Sequence record: NC_042116.1
Reading direction: 5' to 3' (one strand)
DNA: 64,000 nucleotides
This document shows positions 1 through 64,000 of this stretch, one piece after another. The first letter of the stretch is position 1; each line of letters begins with the position of its first letter. The notes under the pieces were generated by a model. That model was not told the DNA's origin and ran no database searches. It saw only the letters and a list, made by a program, of their open reading frames with translations. The translations under genes were made by a program, and so were the position numbers.

Positions 1-756
1 ATTGTAACTCGTGACCTATCACGCGATATCCCTTCTTATGAAGATTGTAGATATCCATCACATTTAATTAGTTGGCTACATTTAAATAATTTATTAGTAC
101 TGTTAAGTAGCTACCCAATTGATGATGATGAACGTTATTTTATTGAAATTTTTAAAATTACTGATTTGGGTAGTACTATTACATGGTTTACTGAATTACT
201 TGAACAATACAATAAAGGAATGGATGGGGAACACGAATTTAGATATACAGGAAAATTATTGTATACTATATTACATAACTTCAATGAACTAGAAGTAGAC
301 CCTGTTATTCAATTAATAACTGATGAAGAAAAAGAAGCATATCAACATTTTTACCGTACCCAAGTTTGGGATTCGACCGTTAAAGAAACAAAGACTTATA
401 CACGTGAAGAAGCATTACAAACAATTGAATTTAATAAAGGTTTACTTTCTATGTTTGAAATGTCAGTACTTTTAGGTGCACGTGGTACAGATCCTACCCG
501 TACAAATAATTATGTTTTCAAAAAATGTATGGAAGAATTGGGTGAAATGGCAGTAGAAGATCAAATTGAAAATGGTCTTTCATATAAAGATGCTGGCAGT
601 GATGGTGTTGCTGGTGAAGCTGTAGATCTTGCAATTTGTGCAATGGATATGTTTGCCTTGCAGTATGGACATTTAAATCCAGAAGAAATTCAAGAGAAGT
701 TTATCATTTATATGAATAAAAAATTAAACAAATGGAAAAATACTTTAGGAAAATAA
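1..756 (+). CDS. 5'-truncated protein with C-terminal MazG-like NTP pyrophosphohydrolase domain
   Basis: Frame is open from base 1 (IVTRDLSR...), so the true start lies upstream of the window. The C-terminus has KCMEELGEMA...GEAVDLAICAMD, the acidic helical MazG pattern. Confidence 0.6.
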   Translation: MVTRDLSRDIPSYEDCRYPSHLISWLHLNNLLVLLSSYPIDDDERYFIEIFKITDLGSTITWFTELLEQYNKGMDGEHEFRYTGKLLYTILHNFNELEVDPVIQLITDEEKEAYQHFYRTQVWDSTVKETKTYTREEALQTIEFNKGLLSMFEMSVLLGARGTDPTRTNNYVFKKCMEELGEMAVEDQIENGLSYKDAGSDGVAGEAVDLAICAMDMFALQYGHLNPEEIQEKFIIYMNKKLNKWKNTLGK

Positions 757-757
757 T

Positions 758-1033
758 ATGACGGATCATACAACAACAAAAGCATTAACTGATGTTTTAG
801 CAGAAATGAATTCCCAAGATGAAAAATGGGGGGCTGACAGAAATCAACATCCATTTTTATGGCACGTAATTCTAAGTGAAGAAGTAGGGGAAGTTGCTCA
901 AGCGATTTTACATGATGAATTTGGTGGTGACCATGCTGGTACTGCACGAGAAGAACTTGTTCAAGTCGCTGCTGTGGCCTTGCAAATCATTGAACAGTAT
1001 GATAGACTACAAAAAGAAAATGAGGAAAAATAA
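758..1033 (+). CDS. MazG-like nucleotide pyrophosphohydrolase
   Basis: LSEEVGEVAQA and REELVQVAAVA motifs, 91 aa. Confidence 0.75.
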   Translation: MTDHTTTKALTDVLAEMNSQDEKWGADRNQHPFLWHVILSEEVGEVAQAILHDEFGGDHAGTAREELVQVAAVALQIIEQYDRLQKENEEK

Positions 1034-1302
1034 TGATAATTCGTCCAGTACATAATCATATAATTGCAAAAAAACATATAAATGAACCTAAAAGTGCTGG
1101 CGGGATTTTATTAACTGCAAGTGGTGAAGATGAATCAACCCATGCTGAAGTGTTAGCAATTGGTTCTGCATTTAAAGGTAATGTAAAAGTTGGTGATATT
1201 ATCACATATAGTGATGATAAACGTGTTCATACTGAAAAAATTGAGAATGAATATCTATTAATTATGCCAGAAGATTGTGTACTGGCAGTTATTGAAAAAT
1301 AA
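1033..1302 (+). CDS. groES: GroES/Cpn10-like co-chaperonin
   Basis: IRPVHNHII...KSAGGILL mobile loop...EVLAIG...VKVGDII...LLIMPEDCVLAVIE. Confidence 0.9.
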   Translation: MIIRPVHNHIIAKKHINEPKSAGGILLTASGEDESTHAEVLAIGSAFKGNVKVGDIITYSDDKRVHTEKIENEYLLIMPEDCVLAVIEK

Positions 1303-1311
1303 GGTTATACA

Positions 1312-2577
1312 ATGCATCCAGTACTAGTAGAATTACAAAATCGTGGTCTAATTAATCAAAGTACTGATATTTCAGTACTATCTTCTTTACTTGACAATGG
1401 CTCATCAGTGTATTGTGGATTCGACCCAACTGCTGATTCATTGCATATTGGCAGTCTATTACCACTAATGACTATGAAAGTACTAAAAGAATATGGTGTT
1501 AATGTTATTGCACTAGTTGGTGGAGCAACAGGTCGTATTGGCGATCCAAGTTTTAAAGCTCAAGAAAGAAAATTGCTTGATGAAGCTATGGTAGAACATA
1601 ATATTGCAGGTATTACAACACTAATTCGAAGTTTTCTTGGTTCTGATACAGTTATTGTTAATAATTTTGATTGGACTAAAGATCTTTCAGTACTTGACTT
1701 TTTACGTATCTATGGTAAATGTTTTTCTGTTAATACTATGATTTCAAAAGAATCAGTTCGTTCTCGTATCGAACGACCAGATCAAGGTATTTCTTTTACC
1801 GAATTTACTTATCCAATTTTACAAGGTATGGATTTTGAACATCTATATAATGGTGGATGTGCCATTCAGATTGGTGGGTCAGATCAGTGGGGTAATATGA
1901 TTGCCGGAACAGATCTTATTCACAAAATGCATGGAAATGACAAGCAATGTGGTGTTATAACACTTCCATTATTACTAAAATCTGATGGTACTAAATTTGG
2001 AAAATCTGAAACTGGTACGGTATGGCTAAGTCCTGATAAAACTTCAGCATATCATATGTACCAATTTTGGGTTAATATTAGTGATGATGAAATGTACACA
2101 ATGTATCAGTACTTTAAACCTATGTCATTGACATTAGATGAATTTAAACATGAAATGAGTATTAATGCAGTTGCTATGAAAAAAGAGTTTGCATATTTGA
2201 TGACTTCGTTGATTCATGGTGTTGATAAAGCTGATCAAGCCCATAATATTAGTCAATTTATCTTTGGTGAAAAGGTAGTACTTGATAATGATACTATTGT
2301 TATGATGCAGCAATCTGGAATGGGTCATCGCAGTATAATTACTGATTCTAATAATTTGGTATCTACTTTGGTTGAACTTGGTTTAGCTAAATCAAAAAAA
2401 ATGGCACGTGAATTCATTACTAATGGTGCAGCCAAAGTAAATGGTCGTAAAATTAACGAATTTTTCAATCCAGCAACTAATGAATTTATCGAAGATGTTG
2501 ATATGTTTGATATGAAATACTATGTTATACAATGCGGTAAAACCAATTTCTTTGTTGTAGAAAATAGGAGGATTTAA
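1312..2577 (+). CDS. tyrS: tyrosyl-tRNA synthetase
   Basis: YCGFDPTADSLHIGS (HIGH-like), QIGGSDQWGN, KFGKS (KMSKS-like), C-terminal S4-like domain. Confidence 0.97.
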   Translation: MHPVLVELQNRGLINQSTDISVLSSLLDNGSSVYCGFDPTADSLHIGSLLPLMTMKVLKEYGVNVIALVGGATGRIGDPSFKAQERKLLDEAMVEHNIAGITTLIRSFLGSDTVIVNNFDWTKDLSVLDFLRIYGKCFSVNTMISKESVRSRIERPDQGISFTEFTYPILQGMDFEHLYNGGCAIQIGGSDQWGNMIAGTDLIHKMHGNDKQCGVITLPLLLKSDGTKFGKSETGTVWLSPDKTSAYHMYQFWVNISDDEMYTMYQYFKPMSLTLDEFKHEMSINAVAMKKEFAYLMTSLIHGVDKADQAHNISQFIFGEKVVLDNDTIVMMQQSGMGHRSIITDSNNLVSTLVELGLAKSKKMAREFITNGAAKVNGRKINEFFNPATNEFIEDVDMFDMKYYVIQCGKTNFFVVENRRI

Positions 2578-2579
2578 TT

Positions 2580-2804
2580 ATGTCACAAACATATACAGCA
2601 GTTTTATATCGTCCTAATCATTCAGACTATTGTCGTGGTTGTTTAATGGGACAAACTGATTCTGATTTAAAAATTTTCACAGGTTCATCACAGCAAGATA
2701 TTATTGATAAAATTATTCCAGTACTTGTTTAATCCAAGTTAGATTCTGAAAAAAATTTAGAACTTGCTGAATATGAACGTTTGAAATCAAAATTTGGTGA
2801 ATAA
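2580..2804 (+). pseudogene. small ORF interrupted by an in-frame TAA (50 aa + stop + 23 aa)
   Basis: ATG at 2580, TAA at 2730-2732. The same frame continues SKLDSEKNLELAEYERLKSKFGE to TAA 2802-2804, abutting the next ATG at 2805. Confidence 0.4.
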
Positions 2805-3053
2805 ATGAAAATAGTTTTTGTAATAATGGCAGTCCTTATGCTATCATCATGCCGAGTTGACACCAACGATAAAAATATCCCTGTATTTTCAGGGATTATT
2901 AAACAAGACCCACGTATTATCACTGCTGATTTAACAATGGAAAACAATAATTATCATTGTTTTAGTTTTGATGCAGAAAAAGACAATTTAATTTTTATGT
3001 GTAAGAAGGTTAATAATGAAGAAAATTCTTCTAGCGTTACTAGTACTAACTAG
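2805..3053 (+). CDS. putative lipoprotein
   Basis: MKIVFVIMAVLMLSSC lipobox-type signal peptide. Confidence 0.6.
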   Translation: MKIVFVIMAVLMLSSCRVDTNDKNIPVFSGIIKQDPRIITADLTMENNNYHCFSFDAEKDNLIFMCKKVNNEENSSSVTSTN

Positions 3054-3204
3054 TACTGCCTGTACTAGCTTAGATAATGGTTCATATGAACAATATCGAC
3101 CATTTAGTGATAAAGCTGGTTATAATTGTGCAGTTGAAAGTTCAGACATATATCTCATTAATGGTGTACCATCTTTGAAATATATTTGTAATAAGGTAAA
3201 ATAA
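3016..3204 (+). CDS. putative lipoprotein
   Basis: MKKILLALLVLTSTAC lipobox-type signal peptide. Confidence 0.6.
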   Translation: MKKILLALLVLTSTACTSLDNGSYEQYRPFSDKAGYNCAVESSDIYLINGVPSLKYICNKVK

Positions 3205-3734
3205 TGAAAATAACACGTTCATGGGCGATGCCAAATAAGAATACTTTTTTGATCAAGCCTATAAGGGATTTTATTGAACGCGAACTATCGAAAGTAGAGT
3301 TGATTGAAGATGCAGTATTTGTTGATGCTTTTGCTAATAACAGCATATTCAATCCACGAATGACATATACAAATGATTTAGACCCTGATATGCCAACAAC
3401 TCATCATATGGATGCATTGGAATTTCTTAAATCATTAGAATCTGAATCTGTAGATTTTCTACTATTTGACCCACCATATAGTCCAAGACAAGTTTCTGAA
3501 TGTTATAAAAGTTTAGAAATGACTGTTAACATGCAAACTACTCAATCAAGTTTTTGGGGCAATCTAAAGAAAGAGATTGCCAGAGTTATGAAAACTGGTG
3601 GAGTAGTAATGACATTTGGATGGAATAGTGGTGGTATTGGAAAATCGAATGGATTTGAAATAGATGAGATTTTATTTGTAGCACATGGAGGTTGGCATAC
3701 TGACACTTTTTGTGTCAAAGATATAAAAAAATAA
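3204..3734 (+). CDS. putative adenine DNA methyltransferase-like protein (compact phage family)
   Basis: FVDAFAN SAM-binding-like strand and LLFDPPYSPRQ catalytic DPPY motif. Confidence 0.65.
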   Translation: MKITRSWAMPNKNTFLIKPIRDFIERELSKVELIEDAVFVDAFANNSIFNPRMTYTNDLDPDMPTTHHMDALEFLKSLESESVDFLLFDPPYSPRQVSECYKSLEMTVNMQTTQSSFWGNLKKEIARVMKTGGVVMTFGWNSGGIGKSNGFEIDEILFVAHGGWHTDTFCVKDIKK

Positions 3735-3772
3735 TATAAATATCCCTATAGAAGAAAAATATAGGGATATTT
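3735..3772 (+). promoter_or_regulatory. late promoter TATAAATA overlapping a 13-bp RBS-sequestering hairpin
   Basis: TATAAATA 3735-3742. AAATATCCCTATA (3738-3750) pairs with TATAGGGATATTT (3760-3772), which holds the AGGGA RBS of the 3776 gene. Confidence 0.7.
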
Positions 3773-3775
3773 AAG

Positions 3776-4708
3776 ATGAATACTGATGAATATATTAAAG
3801 AAGTTAAATTAGTACATGGTGACAAATATGATTATTCAAAAACCATTTATAATGGTTCAAAAAAGAAATTATCTATAATTTGTCCAGTACATGGAGAGTT
3901 TTTGCAAACTGCATATCATCATAAAACTGGAAGTAATTGTCCCAAATGTGCAACTGAGAACACTCATAAAAAACAACGAATATCTATTGCTAAATTTTTA
4001 GAAGATGCAAATAAAAAGCACGATAATAAATTTGAATATAATATAGAAGTACTGAATAATATAAATGATAAAATAAAAATAATTTGTCCAGTACATGGAG
4101 AATTTGAACAAATTGCTAGAAATCATCTAAGAGGATTTGGCTGCTCAAATTGTAGCTTTAAAAAACAATTAAGCACTCAAGAATTTATAGATGATTCTAA
4201 TATAATACATAATTATTTTTATGATTATAGTAATGTAGTATATAAAAATAATAAAATAAAAATTAATATTATTTGTCCTATACATGGAGAATTTAGTCAA
4301 AAACCAAATTCACATAAAAATGGTCACGGATGTCCACAGTGTAATACAAATGAATCAAAAAAATTAGAAATAATTGACAATTTTTTTATTAATTTTAAAG
4401 TTTCTAAAGAAAAAAAATTTGAAGAATGTAAAAATGTACTACCGTTACCATTTGATAGATATATTAAAAAACTTAAATTATTAATTGAGTATGATGGTGA
4501 ACAACATTTCCATCCAATATCTATATGGGGTGGAGAAGAAGCATTTTTAAAAACTCAACAACGTGATTTAATCAAAACAAATTTTGCAATTAATAATGGT
4601 TTTAATTTTATTAGAATTAAGTACAATGAAAATATTTTAGATAAATTGAAAGAATTTATGAAAAAATATAATGACAATCCAAATGAACAAATTATAATGA
4701 TATATTAA
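3776..4708 (+). mobile_element. free-standing homing-endonuclease-like gene: three CPxHGEF zinc-binding repeats + C-terminal PD-(D/E)xK/DUF559-like nuclease
   Basis: Three ~50-aa repeats (ICPVHGEF...CPKC type); C-terminal LPFDRY...LIEYDGEQHF...RDLIK. Confidence 0.75.
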
Positions 4709-4714
4709 GAATTG

Positions 4715-4830
4715 AGAAATACAAAGCCGTGCCTCTGGCAAAATCCAGTATAAGTCCGTTTACGCTTTATCGCAAGTACTGAGAGAATATTCCTACTCGA
4801 TAATACCAACTCTTAGGGCGTTGTATTTCT
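4715..4830 (+). ncRNA. candidate ~115-nt structured RNA
   Basis: Closing stem AGAAATACAAAGCC/GGCGTTGTATTTCT (13 of 14 pairs). Inner stems CTGG/CCAG and CTGAGAG/CTCTTAG. No ORF; GC above surroundings. Strand assumed from neighbours. Confidence 0.45.
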
Positions 4831-4857
4831 TTTAAGTTAACTAAAAAGAGACAAAAA

Positions 4858-5490
4858 ATGAATATATGTGAAAAGTACTATTGGATTACAGAACATCCAA
4901 AAATTGTGGAATTTGCTGACTCAGCAATGATAGAAGTTACGCCACACATGGTTTGTCCAGAAACAAATCAAATTGAAACATTGGAAATTTTGAATACCAA
5001 ATTACAATTTTGGGTAGAATTCATGATTCCACATTTTGATGAACAATTCAAAGTATACGGTCATGCACATGATTGGGAACTTGATTGTGGTGGGGATACA
5101 TGGGAAGAAGCAATTGATAACTTATATCAAAAAGTACTAGAAAAGTACGGTAATTATACCCAAGAGGATTTAGATAAACAACGAGATGAAGCCATGAAAG
5201 ATTTCGATTTCGATAAATGGTTTGATGAAGCAACAGTTATGAATCAAACGGAACACCGAGTTATGTTAGAACAATACGAAATTGATGAATTCAACCGTGA
5301 TATCGAACATATAGAACTATTATTACCAGTACTATCAAATTTGTTAAAAGATCCAAATCTAACAATGCAACAGTATTCAGATGTTGAATTAGCAATTATA
5401 TGTGCAGGTCATGATTTGTATGTTGCCAAGAAATCGGTAGAATTTGGTTATAATGTTGAAGTATATGGTATAACGGATGAAAATATCTAA
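4858..5490 (+). CDS. hypothetical protein
   Basis: 210-aa ORF with AAGAG RBS; no motif recognised. Confidence 0.7.
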   Translation: MNICEKYYWITEHPKIVEFADSAMIEVTPHMVCPETNQIETLEILNTKLQFWVEFMIPHFDEQFKVYGHAHDWELDCGGDTWEEAIDNLYQKVLEKYGNYTQEDLDKQRDEAMKDFDFDKWFDEATVMNQTEHRVMLEQYEIDEFNRDIEHIELLLPVLSNLLKDPNLTMQQYSDVELAIICAGHDLYVAKKSVEFGYNVEVYGITDENI

Positions 5491-5845
5491 ATTGGTTGGT
5501 ATATTGAATGATATGCCACGTAAAAATAAATCCAGTGTTTCACGTAAGCATTACACAATTATTGCGTGTGCACTAGATAAAAGAGGACGAGTACTGGCAA
5601 TGCGAACTAATGATTATAATTGTTCACATCCATTACAAAAGTACTATGCAGAGAAAGTTGGAAGACCTGAAGCCATTTTTCTACATGCAGAAGTAGCAAC
5701 ACTTATAGCAGCCCGTAAAGAAGTTTATAAATTGCTTATTGCAAGGGTCGATATGCAAGGTAATCCATTACCTGCTAAGCCATGTTCGATATGTGAAAAA
5801 GCAATTGCAGCATTTGGAGTAAAAGAAATTGAATATACCCAATGA
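5477..5845 (+). CDS. cytidine/dCMP deaminase-fold protein
   Basis: HAE and PCSIC zinc-binding motifs. Confidence 0.75.
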   Translation: MKISKLVGILNDMPRKNKSSVSRKHYTIIACALDKRGRVLAMRTNDYNCSHPLQKYYAEKVGRPEAIFLHAEVATLIAARKEVYKLLIARVDMQGNPLPAKPCSICEKAIAAFGVKEIEYTQ

Positions 5846-6155
5846 AAATTATTTAGGTTCAATCATACATTTATATAATGGATTAAATTTTAAAGTTAAA
5901 TTTTCTCTAAGTACTGAAGAGTATCAATATCTTCGTAAAAAATATAATGTTAAAAAGATAGTTCCTAGAAATCAAAGAATATGTTGGAAATGTGATAAAT
6001 CAACTGTTAGTAAAAATATTAAAAGTACAAATTTGTGTGATGACTGTTATAAAAACAGTGCGAATCAATATTATTATAACTATCATCGTTTAGTATCGAT
6101 TGATTCAGTTCCAATGATTTATAAGATATATACAGGTAAAATTTATGACAATTAA
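5829..6155 (+). CDS. hypothetical zinc-ribbon protein
   Basis: CWKC...CDDC; TTG start preceded by GGAG. Confidence 0.55.
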   Translation: MNIPNENYLGSIIHLYNGLNFKVKFSLSTEEYQYLRKKYNVKKIVPRNQRICWKCDKSTVSKNIKSTNLCDDCYKNSANQYYYNYHRLVSIDSVPMIYKIYTGKIYDN

Positions 6156-6777
6156 TTATAATAAAATTGAAGAAATAATTATAAGATATCCACATGAAAC
6201 TGTTGAATTTATATCAAATCATCTAAAAGTGGATAATAAATTTGTAAGACGGATTGCTAAAAAATTCAATTTAAAACGGGAGCCATTGAAATTGAGAAAT
6301 CCTAGTATAGAATTTTTATCTAATTACTATAACATTAATATTTCAATTTTAAAAGATATTGAGAAGTCTTCAGTATATCGCAAACCATTTCCACCAACTA
6401 TAATTAATACGTTACGAGAAGTTCTAATTAGAAAATTTGGAAAACCAATGTCAACAAAACATTGGGATACTATTTCATCAATTGGAATTGAAAATATAAG
6501 ACATGTGATAATTTATTATCCTGAATTTACCAATTCTGCACTTGCAAAAGATGTTAATTGTGATAAATCAACTATTACACTAATTGGTAATTTGTACAGT
6601 TTAGAAAAAAATGATAGAGAAAGTATGTTTTGTGATAAATGTAGAATCAATCATTTACCACCTAAAACATATAAATCTGGAAATCTATGTAAAAAATGTT
6701 GGACTACTCGTATGTCTGAGTATCAATACATATATTATCCTACCACCCAAATAAAAAAATCAAAAGGTAATAAATGA
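6145..6777 (+). CDS. hypothetical protein with two HTH-like repeats and C-terminal zinc ribbon
   Basis: YPHETVEFISNHLKVD / YPEFTNSALAKDVNCD repeats; CDKC...CKKC. Confidence 0.6.
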   Translation: MTINYNKIEEIIIRYPHETVEFISNHLKVDNKFVRRIAKKFNLKREPLKLRNPSIEFLSNYYNINISILKDIEKSSVYRKPFPPTIINTLREVLIRKFGKPMSTKHWDTISSIGIENIRHVIIYYPEFTNSALAKDVNCDKSTITLIGNLYSLEKNDRESMFCDKCRINHLPPKTYKSGNLCKKCWTTRMSEYQYIYYPTTQIKKSKGNK

Positions 6778-7328
6778 AAAATACAATTATTATTAACTTA
6801 GTAGGTGGTCCTTGCTGTGGTAAAACTACAACCGCTGCTGGATTATTTGCTAAAATGAAATTACATACTAAGCAACAAGTAGAAATTGTAACAGAAGTCA
6901 TTAAAGATTATGTATATGATGAAAACAAAATGGCAATGCAGGATCAAGTACTAATTACTGCTAATCAAAATCACCGCCTATTCCGTTTACAAGGAAAGGT
7001 GGATTTTGTTGTTTCTGATGCTTCTCTTTTGAATGGGATCGTGTATAATGAATTTTATAATGATCAAGAAAATATCAGTTCTATTGTGTCAATTCAGTTA
7101 TATGAACAATACCAAAATATTGTCTTTTTATTGCCACGTAAACCAGAATATGATCAATATGGACGTACACAATCTCTTGAAGAAGCTAAAGTAATTGACC
7201 AACTTTTCGTTGAAAATTTGGATAACCTAAATGTTCCATATATTGATATGAGACAGTATACTCATGAAGAGATGCCAACTCGTATTTTAGAAATACTTAG
7301 CAAACAATATGGATTTAATACATATTAA
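6774..7328 (+). CDS. P-loop nucleotide kinase/ATPase (NadR/AAA_28-like)
   Basis: GGPCCGKTT Walker A; VVSDASLL; YDQYGRTQSLEEAKVID. Confidence 0.75.
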   Translation: MKNTIIINLVGGPCCGKTTTAAGLFAKMKLHTKQQVEIVTEVIKDYVYDENKMAMQDQVLITANQNHRLFRLQGKVDFVVSDASLLNGIVYNEFYNDQENISSIVSIQLYEQYQNIVFLLPRKPEYDQYGRTQSLEEAKVIDQLFVENLDNLNVPYIDMRQYTHEEMPTRILEILSKQYGFNTY

Positions 7329-7339
7329 GGGTATAATAT

Positions 7340-8476
7340 ATGTCAGTAACTATTGAAAAAGAATTTTATATTCCTGAAACTTTTGATATTGTACGTAGAT
7401 TTCAAACAGAATATGACAATAATACTAATGAATACACAGAGTTGAATGAATTAACCGATGAATATTTTACACATTATGTAAATCAAAAAGGTTCTTATGT
7501 TTATTATTTGAATGAACAAACTATTGCAAAAACTGACACATATCAAAATCTACCTATTTCTGGATTAACTATAGATCGGAATACCTATTCAGAAGCTGAT
7601 TATCGTTCATTTGTTGATGGTATTATTATAAAAGATCCACGTGGATTTGAATTTAAAATAAGCATTCGTAATTTTTTATATCTATGTCGTCATCATAATA
7701 TTGAATGTGGTGAAATTAAAGCAGAATGTGTTTTATCATGGTCGGTAAGTGGATACTTAACACTTTTGAGTACTAGTTCTGAATCATATAAAAGTGCAGT
7801 TGTTTATACAAATAAACAATCTATTGTCTTCGATCCTGAAACATTAGAAATTGGTAAAACATATTTCACAAAGAAAAGTACTGATGAATTGGTGTATATT
7901 GGAAAGCATAAGATTAATTCAAAACATGATAATGATGAATTTCCATTTAATTTAAAACCTTCTAAATTAATTAGACCGGTATTTTATAATAAGAAAACAG
8001 ATGAATTTATTACTTTAATTATTTCCAAAAACATTGCAGGAGAAGTTAATTCTGAAATACACGATGTATTTGATCTTATTAATGAATTCAAAAATTCAGT
8101 TCAAGGACGTACCATAACATCCATAACATTTTCTGATTTTACCAAACAACATATTACTGAAAATAAAGATGGTCATTGGAGCGGGAAGGTATTTGTTCAT
8201 AAAGGAAATAATGAATATATCATGATAAATTATTGGACAAATACATGGAGGAAGAATATAAACTTACATGGTAAAATTATATCAAATGCAAGTATTATGT
8301 ATCTTATCGATGGTACATTGGTGAATCCTGAAAACTACTGTGACCGTTGTGCAAGGTTTGATACGGAAATTGAACATGATAAATGGATTGAATTATTGAT
8401 TTCAAAGTCTGCAAAAGTAGCTCATGCTAATTTTGAAGATGAATTAAGTACTTCATTAACATTGTCCAAACGTTAA
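7340..8476 (+). CDS. hypothetical protein
   Basis: 378-aa ORF with AAGGG RBS. Confidence 0.75.
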   Translation: MSVTIEKEFYIPETFDIVRRFQTEYDNNTNEYTELNELTDEYFTHYVNQKGSYVYYLNEQTIAKTDTYQNLPISGLTIDRNTYSEADYRSFVDGIIIKDPRGFEFKISIRNFLYLCRHHNIECGEIKAECVLSWSVSGYLTLLSTSSESYKSAVVYTNKQSIVFDPETLEIGKTYFTKKSTDELVYIGKHKINSKHDNDEFPFNLKPSKLIRPVFYNKKTDEFITLIISKNIAGEVNSEIHDVFDLINEFKNSVQGRTITSITFSDFTKQHITENKDGHWSGKVFVHKGNNEYIMINYWTNTWRKNINLHGKIISNASIMYLIDGTLVNPENYCDRCARFDTEIEHDKWIELLISKSAKVAHANFEDELSTSLTLSKR

Positions 8477-8510
8477 CCAATTACTCACAAACTTGATCTA
8501 GATCAACGAT

Positions 8511-8533
8511 TTAACCCCTTTATATGGGGTTGA
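8511..8533 (+). terminator. hairpin, possible terminator
   Basis: AACCCC-TTTATAT-GGGGTT stem between genes; weak U-tract. Confidence 0.45.
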
Positions 8534-8587
8534 ATCTATTTTAAGTACGTAAATAATTCACCTTAAACAAGACATGGAGAGTCAAAG

Positions 8588-54680: not shown

Positions 54681-54708
54681 AAAAGCCCTGACTATTCAGG
54701 GCTTTTTT
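54681..54708 (+). terminator. rho-independent terminator
   Basis: AAAAGCCCTGA-CTAT-TCAGGGCTTTT. Confidence 0.9.
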
Positions 54709-54757
54709 ATTGCTAAATAATAATATAAATTCCAAATTTAAATAGGGGAAAGTATAA

Positions 54758-55531
54758 ATGGCAAATATGATGGATAAGTATGGTGTTCCTCTACCAAGTG
54801 GTCGCAATAAAACCATGAGCCAACCAAAAATTAAACATAAGTTCAGAGTTGTTGTATCAAACTTTGGTACTGCGATTGATGAAAAAGATTTTGTTGCATT
54901 GGAAGTATCTGAAGTAGATCGTCCTGGTATTTCGTTCGAAACTCATCAACTATATCAATTTGCTACAAATACTTCTTATGTTGGTCGTTGGGATTGGAAA
55001 CCAATCACACTTACAATACGTGATGCAGTTGATAATAAAGTAGCTAAATCTATTATTCGTCAACTACAAAAACAATTAGATTTCCAGCGTAGAATCTCTG
55101 CGAAATCAGAACAAGAATTTGCGGGATATAAATTCCGTATGATGATTGAAACTACTGGCGGGGCAAACCCTGATGATTCACTAACTAACCTAATACGTGA
55201 TACCGCTGTTGATTCAGCTACTGCTATTACTAATAATGAAGGTTTAGTTAATGCAATAGATGATTTTGTCGGCGGGAATGGTTTCAACGCATTAAGTACT
55301 TTAGATCGATGGGTATGTTATGGATGTATAATAACTGACATTGAATGGGATTCATTAGATTATGGGTCATCTCAGTACTTAACTATTAAGTTAACTATTA
55401 AACCTGATAATTGTGTACAGTACGATATGATTGAAGAAATGTATTCTGATAGAATAAGTTCATTACTTCCAGATAATGTTGATAATGCATTAGATATTGT
55501 AGACAGAATATTTGGTTCAGCGAGAATTTAA
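54758..55531 (+). CDS. tail tube protein paralog
   Basis: QPKIKHKFR, GRWDWKPITLTIRD, WVCYGCII, LDYGSS. Confidence 0.8.
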   Translation: MANMMDKYGVPLPSGRNKTMSQPKIKHKFRVVVSNFGTAIDEKDFVALEVSEVDRPGISFETHQLYQFATNTSYVGRWDWKPITLTIRDAVDNKVAKSIIRQLQKQLDFQRRISAKSEQEFAGYKFRMMIETTGGANPDDSLTNLIRDTAVDSATAITNNEGLVNAIDDFVGGNGFNALSTLDRWVCYGCIITDIEWDSLDYGSSQYLTIKLTIKPDNCVQYDMIEEMYSDRISSLLPDNVDNALDIVDRIFGSARI

Positions 55532-55542
55532 GAGGAATAATT

Positions 55543-57095
<1,553 letters not shown>

Positions 57096-57096
57096 T

Positions 57097-57660
57097 ATGA
57101 AAGCAAAACGTGGTGTAGAAGAAGCTTTAGGTCTTCCATCATCAGAAGATTTAAAACGTATTCTTGGAAATAATTACAATGAAGACGAGTTATATTCTGA
57201 CGAGGAAGATGATGAAGATGATAGTACTGAAATAACTGGTATTGAAATTGATGAAGCAAGAAAAACAATGAAACAATTAAAAGAGTATCGTGAACAATTG
57301 AAAGATATTCCTGATATTACAAATAGAAAACAACATTTAGATAGATTAGCAAAATTGGCTGAAGATAAATTTGAAGATATTTTTGATAGAGGTTTTAATT
57401 GCGAAGATAGATTTATGGCTGAGATTATAAATGCAGCTAACGTAATGCTAAAAATTGCTCTTGATGCACATTCAAAAGTTATTGATTCAGATATAAAATT
57501 AATTGATATGCAAATTAAGAAAGATAAAATAGAAATTGAGTTAAATCTTAAGCCTAAACAAGCATTATCCAACAATACTGATCCTAATTCAATTGAAGGT
57601 GAGAAGGTTGTAGTTAAATCTCGTAATGAACTACTCGCTTCGCTGAATCGGAATAAATAA
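57097..57660 (+). CDS. hypothetical morphogenesis-cluster protein
   Basis: Start moved to ATG 57097 after AGGA; acidic N-terminus, helical. Confidence 0.65.
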   Translation: MKAKRGVEEALGLPSSEDLKRILGNNYNEDELYSDEEDDEDDSTEITGIEIDEARKTMKQLKEYREQLKDIPDITNRKQHLDRLAKLAEDKFEDIFDRGFNCEDRFMAEIINAANVMLKIALDAHSKVIDSDIKLIDMQIKKDKIEIELNLKPKQALSNNTDPNSIEGEKVVVKSRNELLASLNRNK

Positions 57661-57687
57661 ATTAAAATACTGTGACTCGGAGTTAAC

Positions 57688-58233
57688 ATGAATAATTTAC
57701 AGAAATTTTTAATAGATCTCACTCCAGAATATTCATATCGTGTTAAATTTGCATGTGAGCCAAGCTCAGAAGATTTACACAAAGTGGTAACTAGACTTAC
57801 CGATAGATATGATGCATTTGAAGTTGGTCCATTAAAGAAAACAATTTTCCAAGACCGCCCATTAGATTTTTACAATCTTGACTGTGGTGAAATTTGGATG
57901 TTCGATTTTAAATGTAATCGTGGCATTCAACCTCAAGTACTTCTATTTGAAATTGGAAGTTTATTGAAATGGCCTGAAACTTTCATTCATATTAGAAATA
58001 ATTTAGAACCATATCAAGAAGAACTTGCTAATTCTGAAGATGATATTGATTTTGATGAATATGTGCCTCGTCTTTTAGATCCTGAACATAACGAAGTTCC
58101 AAAAGTTAATGCTGAAGAACTTGGTGGTCAAGGTCGTGCTGATACAGCAGTAAAAGATGCTATTGAAAATTATAAAAAAGATAAAACACCATATGCAGAA
58201 TATATGTCTGCTGGTTTCGGTAAAAAGGAGTAA
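57688..58233 (+). CDS. hypothetical late protein
   Basis: ATAAATA upstream; GGAG RBS. Confidence 0.7.
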   Translation: MNNLQKFLIDLTPEYSYRVKFACEPSSEDLHKVVTRLTDRYDAFEVGPLKKTIFQDRPLDFYNLDCGEIWMFDFKCNRGIQPQVLLFEIGSLLKWPETFIHIRNNLEPYQEELANSEDDIDFDEYVPRLLDPEHNEVPKVNAEELGGQGRADTAVKDAIENYKKDKTPYAEYMSAGFGKKE

Positions 58234-58236
58234 TCA

Positions 58237-58791
58237 ATGAGTCTTTTAGAAGAAATGTTTGATGGTTCTCAAGAACAATTGAACGAACGTCCTTATAGTC
58301 GTACACAATCAGCGATTGATTCGGTTAAAGGTAAAGCAAAAGGTATGTTTGGTTCTGGTCAAGTTGAACAGGGTGCACAACAATCTGGACAACAAGCTAA
58401 TCAGTTATGGAATGACTTTAAACGTTATGTTGGTAAAAAATACGGAGAGCACCCACAAGCAGTATCATATGCTGATGTTGCTGCCTTTTTTAAAGGTAAT
58501 AATTTAGATATTAAATTTTTAGGCCAAAATGAACGACGTTCATTTACACCAAAAGATGTGGGAACTGCAATACTTTCAGCAGCAAGAGAAATGGCTGATG
58601 ATTATGCAAATGATGAAGAATCTCCACAAGAACAAAATAAACCTGAACAATCTCAAGGTAATCAACCTCAACCTCAAACACAAGGTCAAGGTAATAATGC
58701 ACCACAAGCTGGGTCGAGTTCTGATTTTGCTGGTAAATTATCATCACTTTCTGCATCTGATCGTGCAAAGCTAATGAGACTAATTTCGTAA
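58237..58791 (+). CDS. hypothetical late protein with Q/N-rich linker
   Basis: AAGGAG RBS; ends LSASDRAKLMRLI. Confidence 0.7.
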   Translation: MSLLEEMFDGSQEQLNERPYSRTQSAIDSVKGKAKGMFGSGQVEQGAQQSGQQANQLWNDFKRYVGKKYGEHPQAVSYADVAAFFKGNNLDIKFLGQNERRSFTPKDVGTAILSAAREMADDYANDEESPQEQNKPEQSQGNQPQPQTQGQGNNAPQAGSSSDFAGKLSSLSASDRAKLMRLIS

Positions 58792-58805
58792 TAGGAGAAG
58801 TAAAA

Positions 58806-60161
58806 ATGACAATACTCGGTAATATTAAAGTTCCGAATAATTATGTTTATACTTCTCACAAAGGTACAGAATATGTGTATCTTGATGGATCATGGTTAAA
58901 CTGTGAAACAATGAACGAAGTATCAAATGTTCATAATTTTAAAATGAATCAATCTGCTATTAAACAAATAGCAGAACATAATAATTCAAATGAATTAAAA
59001 ATAGGTAAAAAGTACTTGATCAATGAATCTGAATATGTTTATGTTGGACGTAACCAAGTAACAAAGAATGATTCGTTGCTACATGAAAGTATTAATAAAA
59101 ATATCGTTTCATTGATGGAAGCTGGAAATAGTGACTTTAGTAATTTTGTTCGTGGTAATACTACGGAATTGGAAATTCCTAATAAATTTCAAAGTCAGGG
59201 ATATACTTATAATAAAAGTAAAAACACATGGAGCGGTGATAATGGTGAAATCACCGATACCCAAGATAATAAAGATTTAAATTCTATGGCTATTAAAGAC
59301 ATTCAAAACTATAATTCAAAAGATGACTTTCCAGTTAATAGTACTATTGATTGGCAAGGGAAAACATTAACATGGAATGGTAATAATTGGGTTAATCCAG
59401 ACGGGAGAATTATTGGTAATAAATTTAATTCAAAAGTTTATGATTACCTAGACGAATTTCCTAGTAATAATAAATCATCTGAAAGTGAAGCTGATAATAG
59501 TTCAAAGGATTCAAGTTCAGATGTTTCCGATGTTCCAAATGGATATATATATACCTCAGCTAAACAGAAACGTTATATTAAAAAGAATGGTCAGTGGATT
59601 TCATTAGAAACTAAAAAGCCTATAAATTCATCTACTGCTGCTCCTTTAGAACGTGCTGCAATTGAAGCAATTAAAAAGCAAAATACTTCATCAAAAATTA
59701 AAATTGGTCAAGAATTAAAAAATAATTATGGTCAAATGTATAGATATGTTGGTGGGTTACGTTTCATTTCAGATGAAGGTAAATCATTACCTGAAGATGT
59801 AGCTAGAGAGATTATATCCTCTATAGATGATACAAAACAAAGTAATGAAGAACAACCAGTACAAGGTAATAAAGAACAACCAGCACAATCAGTACAAGGT
59901 AATGAAGAACCTAATAATGCACCAAATGCCCCTATTCAACCAGCACAAAATAACAGTACTGGACAGTCAAATAAACCTGATAGTAATAGTGATCCATTAC
60001 AAGCATTAGCTGATGAAATTAAATCTAATTCATCAGCAACTAGAATTATCGTACTATTAAGCCGTGGTGATAAACTTTCATTAATGGCTGCTGATATTTT
60101 ACTATCTGGTAAAAAGAATGAAGCATTACAGATTCTAAATTCATTAAATAATACAGATTAA
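58806..60161 (+). CDS. hypothetical late protein with three internal ~85-aa repeats
   Basis: VPNNYVYTSHK.., IPNKFQ.., VPNGYIYTSAK.. modules followed by a Q/N/P-rich linker. Confidence 0.75.
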   Translation: MTILGNIKVPNNYVYTSHKGTEYVYLDGSWLNCETMNEVSNVHNFKMNQSAIKQIAEHNNSNELKIGKKYLINESEYVYVGRNQVTKNDSLLHESINKNIVSLMEAGNSDFSNFVRGNTTELEIPNKFQSQGYTYNKSKNTWSGDNGEITDTQDNKDLNSMAIKDIQNYNSKDDFPVNSTIDWQGKTLTWNGNNWVNPDGRIIGNKFNSKVYDYLDEFPSNNKSSESEADNSSKDSSSDVSDVPNGYIYTSAKQKRYIKKNGQWISLETKKPINSSTAAPLERAAIEAIKKQNTSSKIKIGQELKNNYGQMYRYVGGLRFISDEGKSLPEDVAREIISSIDDTKQSNEEQPVQGNKEQPAQSVQGNEEPNNAPNAPIQPAQNNSTGQSNKPDSNSDPLQALADEIKSNSSATRIIVLLSRGDKLSLMAADILLSGKKNEALQILNSLNNTD

Positions 60162-60182
60162 TTAGAAAAGGAATTGATTAAT

Positions 60183-61160
60183 ATGAAAAAACAAGTTAAT
60201 GAAGCATCAGTTCGTATTGATGTTCAAGGTTTAGAATCTAATGATCTTGAAACTCTTTCACGTATGCTTGCTTTAGCTGGACAAGCTGAGAATAAAGGAC
60301 CACAATTTGGTGGTATGTCTTCTATTCCACGCATTATGCCATTAGACATGGATAGCATAGGTGGAGACGAAACTCAACCTATCATGAATCCACTAGACGC
60401 TGTAAGTACCGATGACATGTCAGGAGCAGGTAGTGCTGAATTGGGTGCTGCTGCGGGGGATTTGGCAGGTTCCATCACTGATTTTGGTGATGAAGGGCTT
60501 GACAGTGGGATAGATTCTGGTGTAGAATCTTTCGATGAAGTTCAAGATGAGTCAAGTGCTCCATTTGGTCAAGATGATATCAGTGCTGAAGTTGATTCAG
60601 TTTATACTGGTGATGATGATTTTGACATGGGACGCATGTCTTCCCTAGCTGGAATTCATGAAAGTCAAGATGTTGATGAAGCTGATGACGTACCATTCGA
60701 TTCTGCAAGTGAAGCAAATCCTGATGATGAATCCGTAGATGAAGAAACTATAGGTGAAAGTCTACTTCCAGATTTATCATTGGATGAAGATTCTATTTCT
60801 TCTAATGCTGACTCACAAATAAATCAAGAATTTGGTCCATTTAGAACCGAATTTGAATGTGTTAATGATGGTCAATCAAAAACCAATGGTGTTGAAGGTG
60901 ATAATTTCATCGTCGTACCTAAAGGAAATGCGTTTTATTGGAAACGTACAGTACAGGAAGATGCTGATAATCGTCCAGAACCAGAATTTTATGACGATGA
61001 AGGAATTCGTAACTCACGTCATGATTATCGTCACAAACGCACTGCTCTTGGTGACAATCCTATTCTTTCCGTTGATGAATCCGAAGATGAAGATGAATCT
61101 GTAGATTCAATCTTTGAATCAATCAATGAAAAATATAAGAAATTTATGGAGGGTCTATAA
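60183..61160 (+). CDS. highly acidic low-complexity protein
   Basis: D/E/S/G-rich, in the morphogenesis block. Confidence 0.7.
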   Translation: MKKQVNEASVRIDVQGLESNDLETLSRMLALAGQAENKGPQFGGMSSIPRIMPLDMDSIGGDETQPIMNPLDAVSTDDMSGAGSAELGAAAGDLAGSITDFGDEGLDSGIDSGVESFDEVQDESSAPFGQDDISAEVDSVYTGDDDFDMGRMSSLAGIHESQDVDEADDVPFDSASEANPDDESVDEETIGESLLPDLSLDEDSISSNADSQINQEFGPFRTEFECVNDGQSKTNGVEGDNFIVVPKGNAFYWKRTVQEDADNRPEPEFYDDEGIRNSRHDYRHKRTALGDNPILSVDESEDEDESVDSIFESINEKYKKFMEGL

Positions 61161-61552
61161 TGAGTATGATACGTAATTTAATGGAATCAATTGATGACAT
61201 TTATGAAGCTGATGATGAATCAATGGAACAAGATTCAGAAGTAACACCACAAGAACTACTAAAAGATATTATTGGTTCTCTAAAAGAACTTTCTGAACAA
61301 TTAGCTACCGATTCAGTTCAAGATATGAAAACATTAACATCCGATCTTCAAAATATTTCATCATCTTTGAAAGAATTAGTTTCACCTGAAGCTGATGATG
61401 AATATTCAACTGAATTTGATTCTGAAGAAGAATTAGAAGAAGAATATGGTGCAGAAGATATGGGACCATCTGTAAGTAAGGATGGTATGCAGAATTATGA
61501 AAACCCATGTGGTTCTTCATACCCTGAGAAAAAAGGTTTTGTGGGAATTTAA
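61160..61552 (+). CDS. highly acidic protein
   Basis: D/E-rich with a central helical segment. Confidence 0.7.
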   Translation: MSMIRNLMESIDDIYEADDESMEQDSEVTPQELLKDIIGSLKELSEQLATDSVQDMKTLTSDLQNISSSLKELVSPEADDEYSTEFDSEEELEEEYGAEDMGPSVSKDGMQNYENPCGSSYPEKKGFVGI

Positions 61553-61553
61553 T

Positions 61554-61928
61554 ATGATACCAAAAACCAACAGTACTGAAATTCAAGTAGATGTATTAAT
61601 AAAAATACGGGAAGTTTATGAATTTGATTCTGAACTTTCTGATAGAATGATATTGATATCTATTTTTGATAATTACAGAACTGGTGGTGGTCTTAGGTTG
61701 AGTAAGTTGGGGTATAATATTTGTACTGAATATGATTTGTATGAGTTTACCCCTATTCCTATAAAAAAGGAAGACCGTAATTCTATGGTTTACACTTCTT
61801 TAGATCGTATTTGCACTAGCCCCTATTATATAAAAGGGGATGTTTTGTACTTATCTGATGAACTTGTTATGGCACAACTAACTTTTTGTAGAGATAATTT
61901 TGTAAAATTATTTTTAGCATTTATGTGA
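61554..61928 (+). CDS. hypothetical protein
   Basis: Start moved to ATG 61554. Confidence 0.65.
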   Translation: MIPKTNSTEIQVDVLIKIREVYEFDSELSDRMILISIFDNYRTGGGLRLSKLGYNICTEYDLYEFTPIPIKKEDRNSMVYTSLDRICTSPYYIKGDVLYLSDELVMAQLTFCRDNFVKLFLAFM

Positions 61929-62074: not shown

Positions 62075-63406
62075 ATGAGCGAAAACATTAAAACTGATAG
62101 TCTAAATTATAACTTAAAACCATCTCAAGTTTTTGAAGCAATGCAAGTTGCAGATATAGTTGGTGATAGTTTAATGATTTGGGGTTCTCCTGGTATTGGT
62201 AAATCTGCAATTGCCCGTCAATATGCGAAAGAAATGTATCCATTGTATAAAGACAACGTTGGTCAGTTAGAATTTTTGCTACAACGTGCACAAAATGAAG
62301 ATGATACGTTAGTTACTATGAATGATTATTTGGATTTTAAAAATTCATTACTAGATCAAGAAACCAATTTTATTGATTTTCGTTTATCACAGATTGAGCC
62401 ATCGGATCTTCGTGGTATTCCAATTCCAGTAAAAATGTATTATGATTTAGCAGGAAATCAGATTCTAGAATCTGAATTAGATAAACATCCAATTTATCAA
62501 ACTGATACTTCAGTTGTATGGGCTGCTCCAGATATTCTTAAATTGAATCCTAGCTGGAAAGGTGTAATCTTATTTGATGAAATTAACTCTGCAATGCCAA
62601 TTGTTCAAGCTGCTTCATATCAGTTAATTTTAGACCGTTGTGTCGGAGAACTAATACTTCCATCAACTGCATTGATTCTTGCAGCAGGAAACCGTGAAAC
62701 TGATGGTGGTGTAACATTTAGTTTAGCAACTCCATTGCGTGACCGAATGACTCACGTAGAAATGATTCCAGACTATATGGATTGGATTGAAAATTATGCA
62801 ATTCCTAATCGGCTAAATGCTGGTACTATTGCTTATATTAAAGAAACTGGTTCTAAAAACTTTAATACATTAAGCCCTAAAGATACTAGTCATTCTGGCG
62901 GTTCTTCACCACGTTCATGGACTCGTGTATCAGAAATCGAAACAGTACGTAAACAATTAGGTACTTCTTCTCAAGTTTACAAAGCATTAATTGCTGGTCG
63001 AGTTGGTAATATAGCTGCAATTGATTATGTAACTTATATTGAAAATATGGCAGGTCTTCCAGATGTAATGGATATTATGAATGGATTAGTAACTGATTTT
63101 AGTGAACATGTTGAAGAAATATCAAAAAATTATTTCATTGTATTAAATTTAGTATATAAAATTATTGAATTTTTCAGTAAAAAAGTTGAAGGTTCTATTA
63201 CATTAGAACAATGGCGTTCTTATTGTACAAATTTCTTAACGTTTATCGATACTAATTTTGCTTCAACACAAACTGAATTAATTGTTCATGCAGTTCGAAC
63301 TTTCACTGACGCAAATGTTAATATTTCATATGCAGAAGTTCCAGTGTTTAAATCGTTTGTTACCAAATATGGTCCATTACTACGTAAGTGCCGAACAATA
63401 AAATAA
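62075..63406 (+). CDS. MoxR-like AAA+ ATPase
   Basis: WGSPGIGKS, DLRGIP, LFDEINSA, LAAGNRETD, LRDRM, SPRSW; start moved to ATG 62075. Confidence 0.88.
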   Translation: MSENIKTDSLNYNLKPSQVFEAMQVADIVGDSLMIWGSPGIGKSAIARQYAKEMYPLYKDNVGQLEFLLQRAQNEDDTLVTMNDYLDFKNSLLDQETNFIDFRLSQIEPSDLRGIPIPVKMYYDLAGNQILESELDKHPIYQTDTSVVWAAPDILKLNPSWKGVILFDEINSAMPIVQAASYQLILDRCVGELILPSTALILAAGNRETDGGVTFSLATPLRDRMTHVEMIPDYMDWIENYAIPNRLNAGTIAYIKETGSKNFNTLSPKDTSHSGGSSPRSWTRVSEIETVRKQLGTSSQVYKALIAGRVGNIAAIDYVTYIENMAGLPDVMDIMNGLVTDFSEHVEEISKNYFIVLNLVYKIIEFFSKKVEGSITLEQWRSYCTNFLTFIDTNFASTQTELIVHAVRTFTDANVNISYAEVPVFKSFVTKYGPLLRKCRTIK

Positions 63407-63413
63407 TTATAAT

Positions 63414-63436
63414 AAGGGACATTTTATATGTCCCTT
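63414..63436 (+). terminator. hairpin
   Basis: AAGGGACA-TTTTATA-TGTCCCTT. Confidence 0.6.
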
Positions 63437-63455
63437 TAATTGTATGAGAGGTTAT

Positions 63456-64000
63456 ATGAATACACCATATGTTGTATCAAAAGAATATGCTGATGAATGT
63501 CATGATAGAATTATAGTTGCTCGAACTTCAATGATAATGGGATGTCCATTTTTTGGAATACTTGCAGCTAGATTAAAATTAGTACCAAATAATACATGGT
63601 GCCGTACTTTAGCGGTTGATGGAAAACATTTATATTATAATGTTGAATTTATCATGGGTATTGAAGATCCATTACGCCGACAAGAATATGAAGATAAACT
63701 TAAAACTACAATTGATGATTTAACTACCGAACAAATTAAAGATGCATTGGATGGATTGAGTCATCAGAATTTAGTTGCAGCTATATGTCATGAAATTCTT
63801 CATTGTGCATATAATCATTTTTTACGCCGTGGATCTCGTAATCCAAAAAAATGGAATAAAGCTGCTGATTATGCAATTAATCAAATTATCAATCGCGATA
63901 AGAAAATGGGATTAATTAAAAAATCATGGCTATATAATTCTGATTATGAAGGTAAAGCTGCGGAAGAAATTTATAATATTTTAGAAGAACTAGGTGATAG
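63456..64000 (+). CDS. 3'-truncated metallopeptidase-like protein (DUF2201 N-terminal type), MoxR partner
   Basis: Translated by hand: PFFGILAARL, TLAVDG, CHEILH (HExxH), WNKAADYAIN; open to the window end. Confidence 0.8.
   Translation, partial: MNTPYVVSKEYADECHDRIIVARTSMIMGCPFFGILAARLKLVPNNTWCRTLAVDGKHLYYNVEFIMGIEDPLRRQEYEDKLKTTIDDLTTEQIKDALDGLSHQNLVAAICHEILHCAYNHFLRRGSRNPKKWNKAADYAINQIINRDKKMGLIKKSWLYNSDYEGKAAEEIYNILEELGD

Follow-up and report, generated by a model that had tools for sequence, protein, structure and literature searches.

A clade-wide excess of the palindrome AGTACT in RaK2-like jumbo phages: a candidate sequence address on phage DNA

Introduction

Why does a phage genome carry one six-base palindrome at about ten times its expected number? 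The question is raised by a stretch of 64,000 nucleotides, called the window below, which is identical to positions 62001-126000 of the record of Yersinia phage fHe-Yen9-04 (NC_042116.1, 354,378 bp), a member of the genus Eneladusvirus. This RaK2-like jumbo myovirus is a distant relative of T4. The palindrome is AGTACT, the ScaI site. A preliminary description of the window, made from the sequence letters, had reported its over-representation and proposed that it was positively selected, for example as a self-mark methylated by a phage enzyme. Here we report that the observation is more general than that description knew, because the excess is found throughout the clade of RaK2-like phages and again in a second phage lineage.

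The sequence of fHe-Yen9-04 (Yen9-04 hereafter) analyzed here covered bases 12-126 kb, and coordinates of features are window positions. Enrichment figures for the clade were obtained from 50-kb samples of phages BF, Yen9-03, CBB, GAP32, XbC2, PBECO4, RaK2, Kaldavass, and Hallingskeid.

Results

Excess of AGTACT in the window

The window contained 158 exact copies of AGTACT, while dinucleotide-preserving shuffles of the same sequence contained 12.9 ± 3.5 and never more than 21. The roughly ten-fold, window-wide excess described before was therefore confirmed, and the hand counts given for three regions were right (21 sites in positions 1-6000, 17 in 38-44 kb, and 22 in 13.1-21.4 kb). Markov models of orders 0, 1, 2, and 3 predicted 21, 13.6, 24.7, and 57.4 copies, respectively. 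AGTACT was a clear outlier among hexamers: its z-score was the highest of all (z = 39 at order 1 and z = 13 at order 3), and it ranked second of 4096 by raw count in a window of 31% GC.

AGTACT was the sole strongly enriched hexamer palindrome in the window, at 11.6 times expectation. It accounted for 158 of the 345 GTAC tetramers, while GGTACC and CGTACG did not occur at all. Eleven hexamer palindromes of which 3 or more copies were expected had none in the window (CCATGG, TGGCCA, GCATGC, GGATCC, CAGCTG, CTGCAG, GGTACC, TGCGCA, AGGCCT, CCTAGG, and TCCGGA), which is the usual pattern in phages. The runner-up among enriched hexamer palindromes was CACGTG, with 17 copies against 4.6 expected, and the tetramer GCGC was absent from the window.

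According to the open reading frame (ORF) calls, 147 sites were placed in genes on the + strand, 2 in an ORF called on the - strand, and 9 in intergenic DNA or at gene boundaries. The counts per gene fitted one uniform density (chi-square 71 on 86 degrees of freedom), and the sites were spread uniformly along the length of genes. Two of the earlier gene-level counts needed amendment. The tail sheath gene, a conserved structural gene rich in the motif, has 11 sites in our site list, where 10 had been counted. The statement that the homing-endonuclease genes carry only about one site each per kb held for the endonuclease gene g123, with 1 site in 933 bp, but not for the HNH gene g156, which has 2 in 534 bp and is of average density.

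The excess resides at the level of DNA

Sites fell in all three codon phases, as had been noticed: 77 were read as AGT-ACT, 54 as nnA-GTA-CTn, and 16 as nAG-TAC-Tnn. We shuffled synonymous codons within genes, which holds protein sequence, dipeptides, and codon usage fixed gene by gene. The shuffled genes contained 32.7 ± 5.3 sites (maximum 49), 4.5 times fewer than the 147 observed, and genes in which the order of codons was shuffled contained 19.6 ± 4.5. Every phase was above the synonymous null (77 vs 21.5, 16 vs 1.4, and 54 vs 9.5), with phase 1 enriched about 11-fold. In a larger set of 106 kb of Yen9-04 coding sequence, 308 sites were observed against 66.7 ± 6.7 in the protein- and codon-preserving shuffle. 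The excess thus persisted under the codon- and dipeptide-preserving shuffle that the preliminary description had named as able to refute it, and its statement that amino-acid or codon bias does not explain the sites was upheld.

Non-coding DNA pooled from nine stretches of the clade contained 60 copies of AGTACT against 6.4 expected, an enrichment of about 9-fold, like that in genes. These results showed that the enrichment is real and resides at the DNA level.

The pressure for AGTACT is strong enough to bend the composition of the proteins. Ser-Thr dipeptides numbered 137 against 91 expected, and Val-Leu dipeptides 133 against 91 expected, whereas the reversed dipeptides were not enriched (Thr-Ser 89 and Leu-Val 75). 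AGT-ACT encodes 56% of the Ser-Thr dipeptides.

Symmetric flanks and slightly even spacing

With codon phase and the neighboring base controlled, C at position -1 and G at position +1 were favored about 2-fold in seven genomes, while G at -1 and C at +1 were disfavored 2-3-fold. The extra information was confined to these two positions, which ruled out a longer hidden motif, and the choices at the two flanks were independent of each other. The full word is thus cAGTACTg, with the outer bases as a weaker layer. A flank preference that is two-fold symmetric and blind to the reading frame speaks for a symmetric reader that recognizes duplex DNA, and against a signal at the level of RNA or translation.

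Gaps between sites were slightly more even than random. The coefficient of variation (CV) of gaps was 0.91 in Yen9-04 (bases 12-126 kb) against 0.995 in simulation, and 0.81-0.95 against about 0.99 in all seven genomes, with a deficit of close pairs. There was a small excess of AGTACT pairs exactly 10 bp apart, but it amounted to 8 pairs over the seven genomes, some of them homologous, and is a weak signal. The sole periodicity was 3 bp. With close pairs deficient overall, clustering by helical phase was ruled out.

AGTACT marks the whole RaK2-like clade and is avoided in its sister group

AGTACT was enriched 8-14-fold, with a hexamer rank of 1-5, in all nine relatives sampled. It occurred at 3.4 copies per kb in the early-gene region of Yen9-04 (12-62 kb) and reached 7 per kb in a stretch of a Munch-like contig. 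The trait therefore spans the whole RaK2-like clade.

The nearest outgroup by tail sheath was the PA5oct-like Pseudomonas phage Ettore (OR805294.1, 237000-286999). In 50 kb of this phage, which is of similar GC, AGTACT occurred once against 16.2 expected, a strong avoidance. The contrast between the RaK2-like clade and its sister group is one of presence and absence. On the side of the host, a 50-kb sample of Escherichia coli K-12 had 3 copies, about 0.06 per kb, compared with 2.5-3.4 per kb in phage. Among E. coli phages, a T4-like stretch and a further siphovirus module were also poor in AGTACT.

A second lineage of about 32-kb prophages shares the word

We scanned a viral-contig collection twice for clusters of AGTACT, and statements on lineages hold among the matches listed. 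These comprised the jumbo phages and one unrelated group; the remainder were tandem repeats of local extent and a single 8-kb contig. This contig (IMGVR_UViG_3300027782_006434, 8127 bp), assigned to neither lineage, had dispersed AGTACT at rank 1, with 22 copies against 3 expected.

Members of the unrelated group are contigs of about 31-35 kb with about 41% GC. They encode a large serine recombinase and have a lambda-like module of head and tail genes (small and large terminase, portal, fused protease-capsid protein, tape measure, and J-like fibre). They are temperate siphovirus prophages of Leclercia, Phytobacter, and Enterobacter, and the adjoining host DNA has 51-63% GC. The loci came from IMG/VR contigs (e.g. 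IMGVR_UViG_3300011531_000024) and from GTDB genomes of the three genera (our loci L134-L195, L066, and L035). In the 55 prophage loci, including two more distant members, AGTACT ranked first or second among hexamers at 1.4-6 copies per kb, mostly 3-6. The extended word CAGTACTG was enriched about 100-fold in the closest members. More distant relatives by terminase (38-40% identity) had 0-2 copies of AGTACT. In one degenerate prophage copy, the density of AGTACT ended at the host junction, and no site was found in the host DNA beyond.

A tail protein of one of these prophages (L187, 16458-19316) was 52% identical over 940 residues to the tail protein gp063 of PBECO4 (L007, 31227-34016), which is evidence that a receptor-binding gene has been exchanged by a jumbo phage and a small temperate one. 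When all prophage ORFs were compared with about 560 kb of jumbo phage sequence by tblastn, the genes in common were a T4-type lysozyme, a mobile HNH endonuclease, and this tail protein only. For twelve prophage proteins that were early or unassigned, no RaK2-like homolog was found in 50,697 phage records. The shared HNH family proved to be a generic mobile homing endonuclease, present in more than 1,400 records. The prophages also carry T4-type homing endonuclease genes (AP2-HNH, SegE-like GIY-YIG, and RB49ORF239c-like), an unusual feature in a temperate phage of this size.

The isolate nearest to the prophage tail protein, Escherichia phage DCP80, showed no enrichment of AGTACT. Its record (PQ671644.1, 1-50000) is classed as a T4-like Gaprivervirus, and its first 24 kb are a siphovirus-type terminase and tail module. 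The record also has two inverted rIIA genes, at 38143-40377 (- strand) and 43541-45775 (+ strand), and looks chimeric or misassembled.

Sites turn over while their density is maintained

In alignments with BF, CBB, GAP32, and XbC2, 48-58% of the window sites were intact, against 22-36% of phase-matched hexamers. Against PBECO4 the figure was 12% with 17% expected, and the density of AGTACT was nonetheless kept in that phage. The rate of loss per site is thus about half of the background, with sites turning over and their number being maintained. A gain/loss balance worked by hand from counts of one-mismatch neighbors put the scaled selection coefficient per site at about 1-2, the same regime as codon bias, Chi, or uptake sequences. 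Judged from these alignments, site turnover fits weak selection on density.

Among one-mismatch neighbors, AGTATT and AATACT were at 1.45 times expectation. AGGACT was the sole neighbor below expectation, with 4 copies against 9.8, and none was clearly depleted. G>A and C>T were the most frequent losses. In the comparison with BF, conservation was 0.87 at G2 against a background of 0.88, and 0.77 at C5 against 0.82, while the four A/T positions of AGTACT were over-conserved. Because over-conservation is found at the A/T positions and G2 and C5 are at background, protection of a methylated cytosine from deamination and T:G-type short-patch repair were ruled out, and the neighbor counts speak in the same direction against any drive of these kinds.

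The trait is independent of methyltransferases

The preliminary description had tied the sites to a beta-class methyltransferase with a TSPPY motif at 24906. The motif is indeed present in the product of this gene, g147, whose best solved relative is the N4-cytosine enzyme M.PvuII (1e-16), but the proposed tie between enzyme and sites failed on distribution. Close orthologs of g147 were found in 18 records only, all Eneladusvirus or Mimasvirus. Yen9-04 has at least five annotated methyltransferases, two of which (g050 and g080) are outside the window; orthologs of g050, g080, g122, and g134 were patchy and each limited to parts of the clade, so that no methyltransferase of Yen9-04 is clade-wide. 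In PBECO4 no methyltransferase is annotated at the syntenic position, and AGTACT is nonetheless enriched 8-fold. Enrichment without the pattern of a cognate methyltransferase was seen in PBECO4, RaK2, Hallingskeid, and the prophage lineage, and a 32.5-kb prophage genome had no methyltransferase domain among the proteins tested.

Published methylomes of two relatives agree. Nanopore sequencing of native versus amplified DNA gave GATC, CCWGG, and TGCAT as the only modified motifs in Kaldavass, and GATC and CCWGG as the only ones in Hallingskeid (PMC11780129). Kaldavass encodes an ortholog of g147 (CDS0509). AGTACT was the commonest hexamer in our 50-kb samples of both phages, with 147 copies against 146 of GATC in Kaldavass and 169 against 141 in Hallingskeid. 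Since AGTACT was at least as frequent as GATC in both samples, its modification would be hard to miss. These results showed that the AGTACT trait is independent of methyltransferases, and g147 or another methyltransferase was rejected as its cause on phyletic distribution and the published methylomes. That the sites are methylated is unlikely, a judgment drawn from this distribution and the methylomes of two relatives.

Some side observations concern modification in the clade. For g080 of Yen9-04 (L010, 27746-28591), annotated as 'type II DNA modification enzyme', the sole close match among the best 60 records was Yen9-04 itself, and Yen9-03, which is 97% identical, shows only three of the four methyltransferases queried. 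Methyltransferase content appears to turn over quickly in the clade. In Erwinia phage Kaldavass (270001-320000), TGCAT, the unassigned motif reported as modified there, was under-represented about 2-4-fold (TGCAT 32 vs 67 and ATGCA 16 vs 62).

Features of the window

Coordinates of the features are collected in Table 1. Nearly every gene of the window is on the + strand. Among their products are NrdD/NrdG, a tyrosyl-tRNA synthetase, and enzymes of RNA repair, and on the structural side the tail sheath and tube and three large tail proteins. Three of the genes are annotated as methyltransferases (g122, g134, and g147), and several resemble homing endonucleases. Directly after g122 lies g123 (3776-4708), an endonuclease with the treble-clef zinc-finger domains DUF4379 and DUF723. 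Serratia phage BF lacks it at this position and Yen9-03 has no more than a fragment, so that it is probably a mobile homing endonuclease.

Table 1. Positions of AGTACT sites, site pairs, and genes discussed in the text.
Feature	Position in window	Strand	Remarks
Dispersed AGTACT, 158 copies	96..61577 (first at 96, last at 61577)	none	Mean spacing about 390 bp
10-bp AGTACT pair (AGTACTAACTAGTACT)	3042..3057	none	One of three such pairs in the window
g122, annotated DNA methyltransferase	3204..3734	+	Orthologs in Eneladusvirus phages only; zero AGTACT
g134, annotated methyltransferase	11639..12382	+	Common to Yen9-03, GAP32, and RB43-like phages; absent from BF at the syntenic position
g147, beta-class N6/N4 DNA methyltransferase	24906..25766	+	Pfam N6_N4_Mtase 1e-35; TSPPY motif; C-terminal FGGSGTT motif
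10-bp AGTACT pair within methyltransferase gene g147	25392..25407 (starts 25392/25402)	none	Pair scan
10-bp AGTACT pair	30830..30845 (starts 30830/30840)	none	Pair scan
Tail sheath gene, 11 AGTACT	50793..53444	+	Site list and annotation; conserved structural gene rich in motif

Discussion

A candidate address on duplex phage DNA

The idea of the preliminary description that AGTACT is positively selected at the DNA level was borne out by the shuffles, the non-coding excess, the symmetric flanks, the roughly two-fold conservation, and the density kept across genera. As the reading of these results we tentatively propose, with a probability of about 0.4, that AGTACT is a positively selected, dispersed self-address on duplex phage DNA, read by a putative two-fold-symmetric factor. 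That a protein reads the sites, that this reader is of phage origin, and that the sites are used as an address are steps we infer. Many weakly selected copies, 2-7 per kb, would be spread evenly over the genome, giving phage DNA about 40 times more AGTACT per kb than the one 50-kb stretch of a host-family chromosome. A two-fold-symmetric, presumably dimeric, DNA-binding factor would read the sites during infection and would use their density as an address by which phage DNA is told from that of the host. Candidate uses are sparing phage DNA from a nuclease; protection while host DNA is broken down; a palindromic, Chi-like attenuation of a nuclease; switching a nuclease to recombination; or recruitment of phage DNA for replication, transcription, or compartmentalization. 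The preliminary description had also named packaging, DNA organization, and parS-like signals.

Several points weigh against this proposal. The address idea leans on a density contrast from one 50-kb host sample. A palindrome cannot show the skew of strand or orientation that identified Chi and KOPS. Positional conservation of the sites is moderate only, their evenness of spacing is slight, and the genomes in the comparison are not independent of one another. The comparison of the two lineages yielded no reader protein, although no scan of the whole Yen9-04 proteome was aimed at restriction-endonuclease-like (including ScaI-type) or helix-turn-helix families. A common reader encoded by the phages is not evident, given the three genes shared by the prophages and the jumbo phages.

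A bolder version would be that RaK2-like phages mark themselves by a sequence code with no base modification, a dense and evenly spread cAGTACTg that a phage factor reads so as to spare or recruit DNA rich in sites, and that prophages of the same hosts copied the code in order to pass as self during the jumbo phage's takeover of the cell. We regard this version as doubtful at present. Among the contigs listed, the trait is found in two lineages only, and these meet in the same cells; speculatively, this favors a reader supplied by the jumbo phage and copying by the prophage over a general host factor.

Alternative explanations

Other explanations of the excess differ in what reads or makes the sites. 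They could be read by a factor of the Enterobacterales host, not by a phage protein, with site-rich mobile DNA gaining, for example through escape from a host nuclease or because a host DNA-binding protein is titrated or activated. Two unrelated phage lineages that infect the same bacterial family carry the same extended motif, no candidate reader gene is common to the small prophage and the jumbo phages, and the sister group that infects Pseudomonas is without the trait, all of which speaks for a host factor. The site of the nucleoid-occlusion protein SlmA, GTGAGTACTCAC, also has AGTACT as its core. However, dispersed enrichment was essentially limited to two lineages among the matches listed, apart from local repeats and the unplaced contig, and the site-poor T4-like stretch and siphovirus module indicate that such a factor goes unused by most enteric phages. 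Flank preference is opposite to that of the SlmA site, and we know of no host protein that recognizes cAGTACTg. We therefore hold a host factor to be unlikely, though worth keeping in view. That the sites are functionless products of biased mutation, repair, or gene conversion, such as very-short-patch-like repair restoring the site or methylated cytosines escaping deamination, seems less probable again. Recombination is heavy in these phages, which also encode several methyltransferases and many endonucleases, and a weak biased conversion would mimic the population signature of weak selection. Against this, the positions conserved are the opposite of those expected, no neighbor is clearly depleted, and AGTACT methylation was not reported in the two relatives. 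To our knowledge, no repair bias acts on all six positions plus symmetric flanks.

The version put forward in the preliminary description, an epigenetic self-mark in which g147, as an N4-cytosine enzyme with a ScaI-like target, methylates AGTACT, we consider very improbable. It has in its favor that g147 is a genuine beta-class enzyme related to M.PvuII, that Yen9-04 encodes at least five annotated methyltransferases, and that ScaI-type systems use N4-methylcytosine. It is contradicted by the narrow range of g147 orthologs, by the enrichment in PBECO4, by the lack of any Yen9-04 methyltransferase conserved clade-wide, by the prophage genome in which no methyltransferase domain was found among the proteins tested, and by the nanopore results on Kaldavass and Hallingskeid, for whose abundant AGTACT sites no modification was reported. 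As for a by-product of amino-acid, codon, or codon-pair usage, e.g. Ser-Thr written as AGT-ACT, almost half of the sites are AGT-ACT and both codons are frequent, but this artifact was refuted by the synonymous and codon-order shuffles, by the enrichment in all three phases and in non-coding DNA, and by a flank preference that is symmetric around the site and not around the reading frame.

Comparison with known systems

The pattern resembles that of Chi, the site of RecBCD/AddAB. Like AGTACT, Chi is a short oligomer over-represented genome-wide and found in genes in several frames, with weakly selected copies, and its own role as a density-based self mark that spares DNA from a nuclease invites the comparison by pattern. 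AGTACT shares with Chi an excess in both coding and non-coding DNA and a far lower density in the E. coli sample. Chi is, however, asymmetric, read on one strand, and skewed with replication, and is about 5-fold over-represented at about 0.2 per kb. AGTACT is a palindrome at 2-7 per kb of phage genomes and its helicase-nuclease is only putative. Since it is its own reverse complement and its flanks are symmetric too, no strand skew is possible. The RaK2 annotation has gp46/gp47-type recombination nuclease genes, without a link to AGTACT.

The uptake sequences of Pasteurellaceae (USS) and Neisseria (DUS) are likewise dispersed and roughly even at about 1 per kb, lie in genes in all frames, distort peptides, and turn over in copies. 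AGTACT shows the same pattern in the CV of its gaps, in its use of all phases, and in the excess of Ser-Thr and Val-Leu, and the likeness is one of pattern only. Uptake sequences are non-palindromic words of 9-12 bp in competent bacteria and are maintained by biased uptake plus recombination, whereas AGTACT is a palindrome of 6-8 bp, and we know of no uptake step in the phage life cycle.

The SlmA site has the same central six bases, is palindromic, and belongs to the same Enterobacterales host range; there are about 50 such sites per E. coli chromosome, and the GTG/CAC arms are required. The AGTACT sites described here are without these arms: G at -1 was found in 6 of the 158 window sites and C at +1 in 10 of them, with no preference for T/G at -2 or -3. 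Identity with SlmA sites was ruled out by the flanks, with the depletion of G at -1 (2-3-fold) phase-controlled in seven genomes and GAGTACTC absent from the window. Sites of the parS/Noc type were ruled out as well, because these are few to tens of 14-16-bp palindromes, often clustered, and AGTACT sites are evenly dispersed, unclustered 6-8-bp words numbering in the hundreds.

ScaI-type targets (AGT/ACT) and orphan methyltransferases share with the present case the hexamer itself and an N4/N6 beta-class enzyme in the phage. Restriction targets are normally avoided by phages, as AGTACT is in Ettore, but in the RaK2-like phages it is enriched, is not reported as modified in two relatives, and tracks no methyltransferase. 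Motif-associated nicks are known from T5-like and some Pseudomonas phages, e.g. at WACTRTGAC in Rembedalsseter, and were not reported for either of the RaK2-like phages sequenced, Kaldavass and Hallingskeid (PMC11780129). The nick motifs are similar in being words specific to a phage lineage and enriched over related phages, but they are about 13 asymmetric sites per genome with single-strand breaks, and AGTACT forms hundreds of palindromic sites.

Significance

Full-text literature searches found no earlier description of an excess of AGTACT or ScaI sites in these phages. Bacteria are known to have address words spread over the whole genome, such as Chi, KOPS, and uptake sequences; we are aware of no palindrome of this kind that fills the genomes of phages. 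In practical terms, a ScaI digest would break these genomes into hundreds of fragments, and AGTACT will skew predictors of host or taxon that work on k-mers.

A word that ranks 1-5 among hexamers in one clade, is nearly absent from the sister clade, and is shared as a code with a prophage lineage is a natural experiment, and its sharing by the prophages may be a case of molecular mimicry between phages. If AGTACT is a self-address, it would show how T4-related phages without modified bases separate their own DNA from that of the host, and would give a handle on the protein that reads it, be it a nuclease, a recombination switch, or a compartment-targeting factor.

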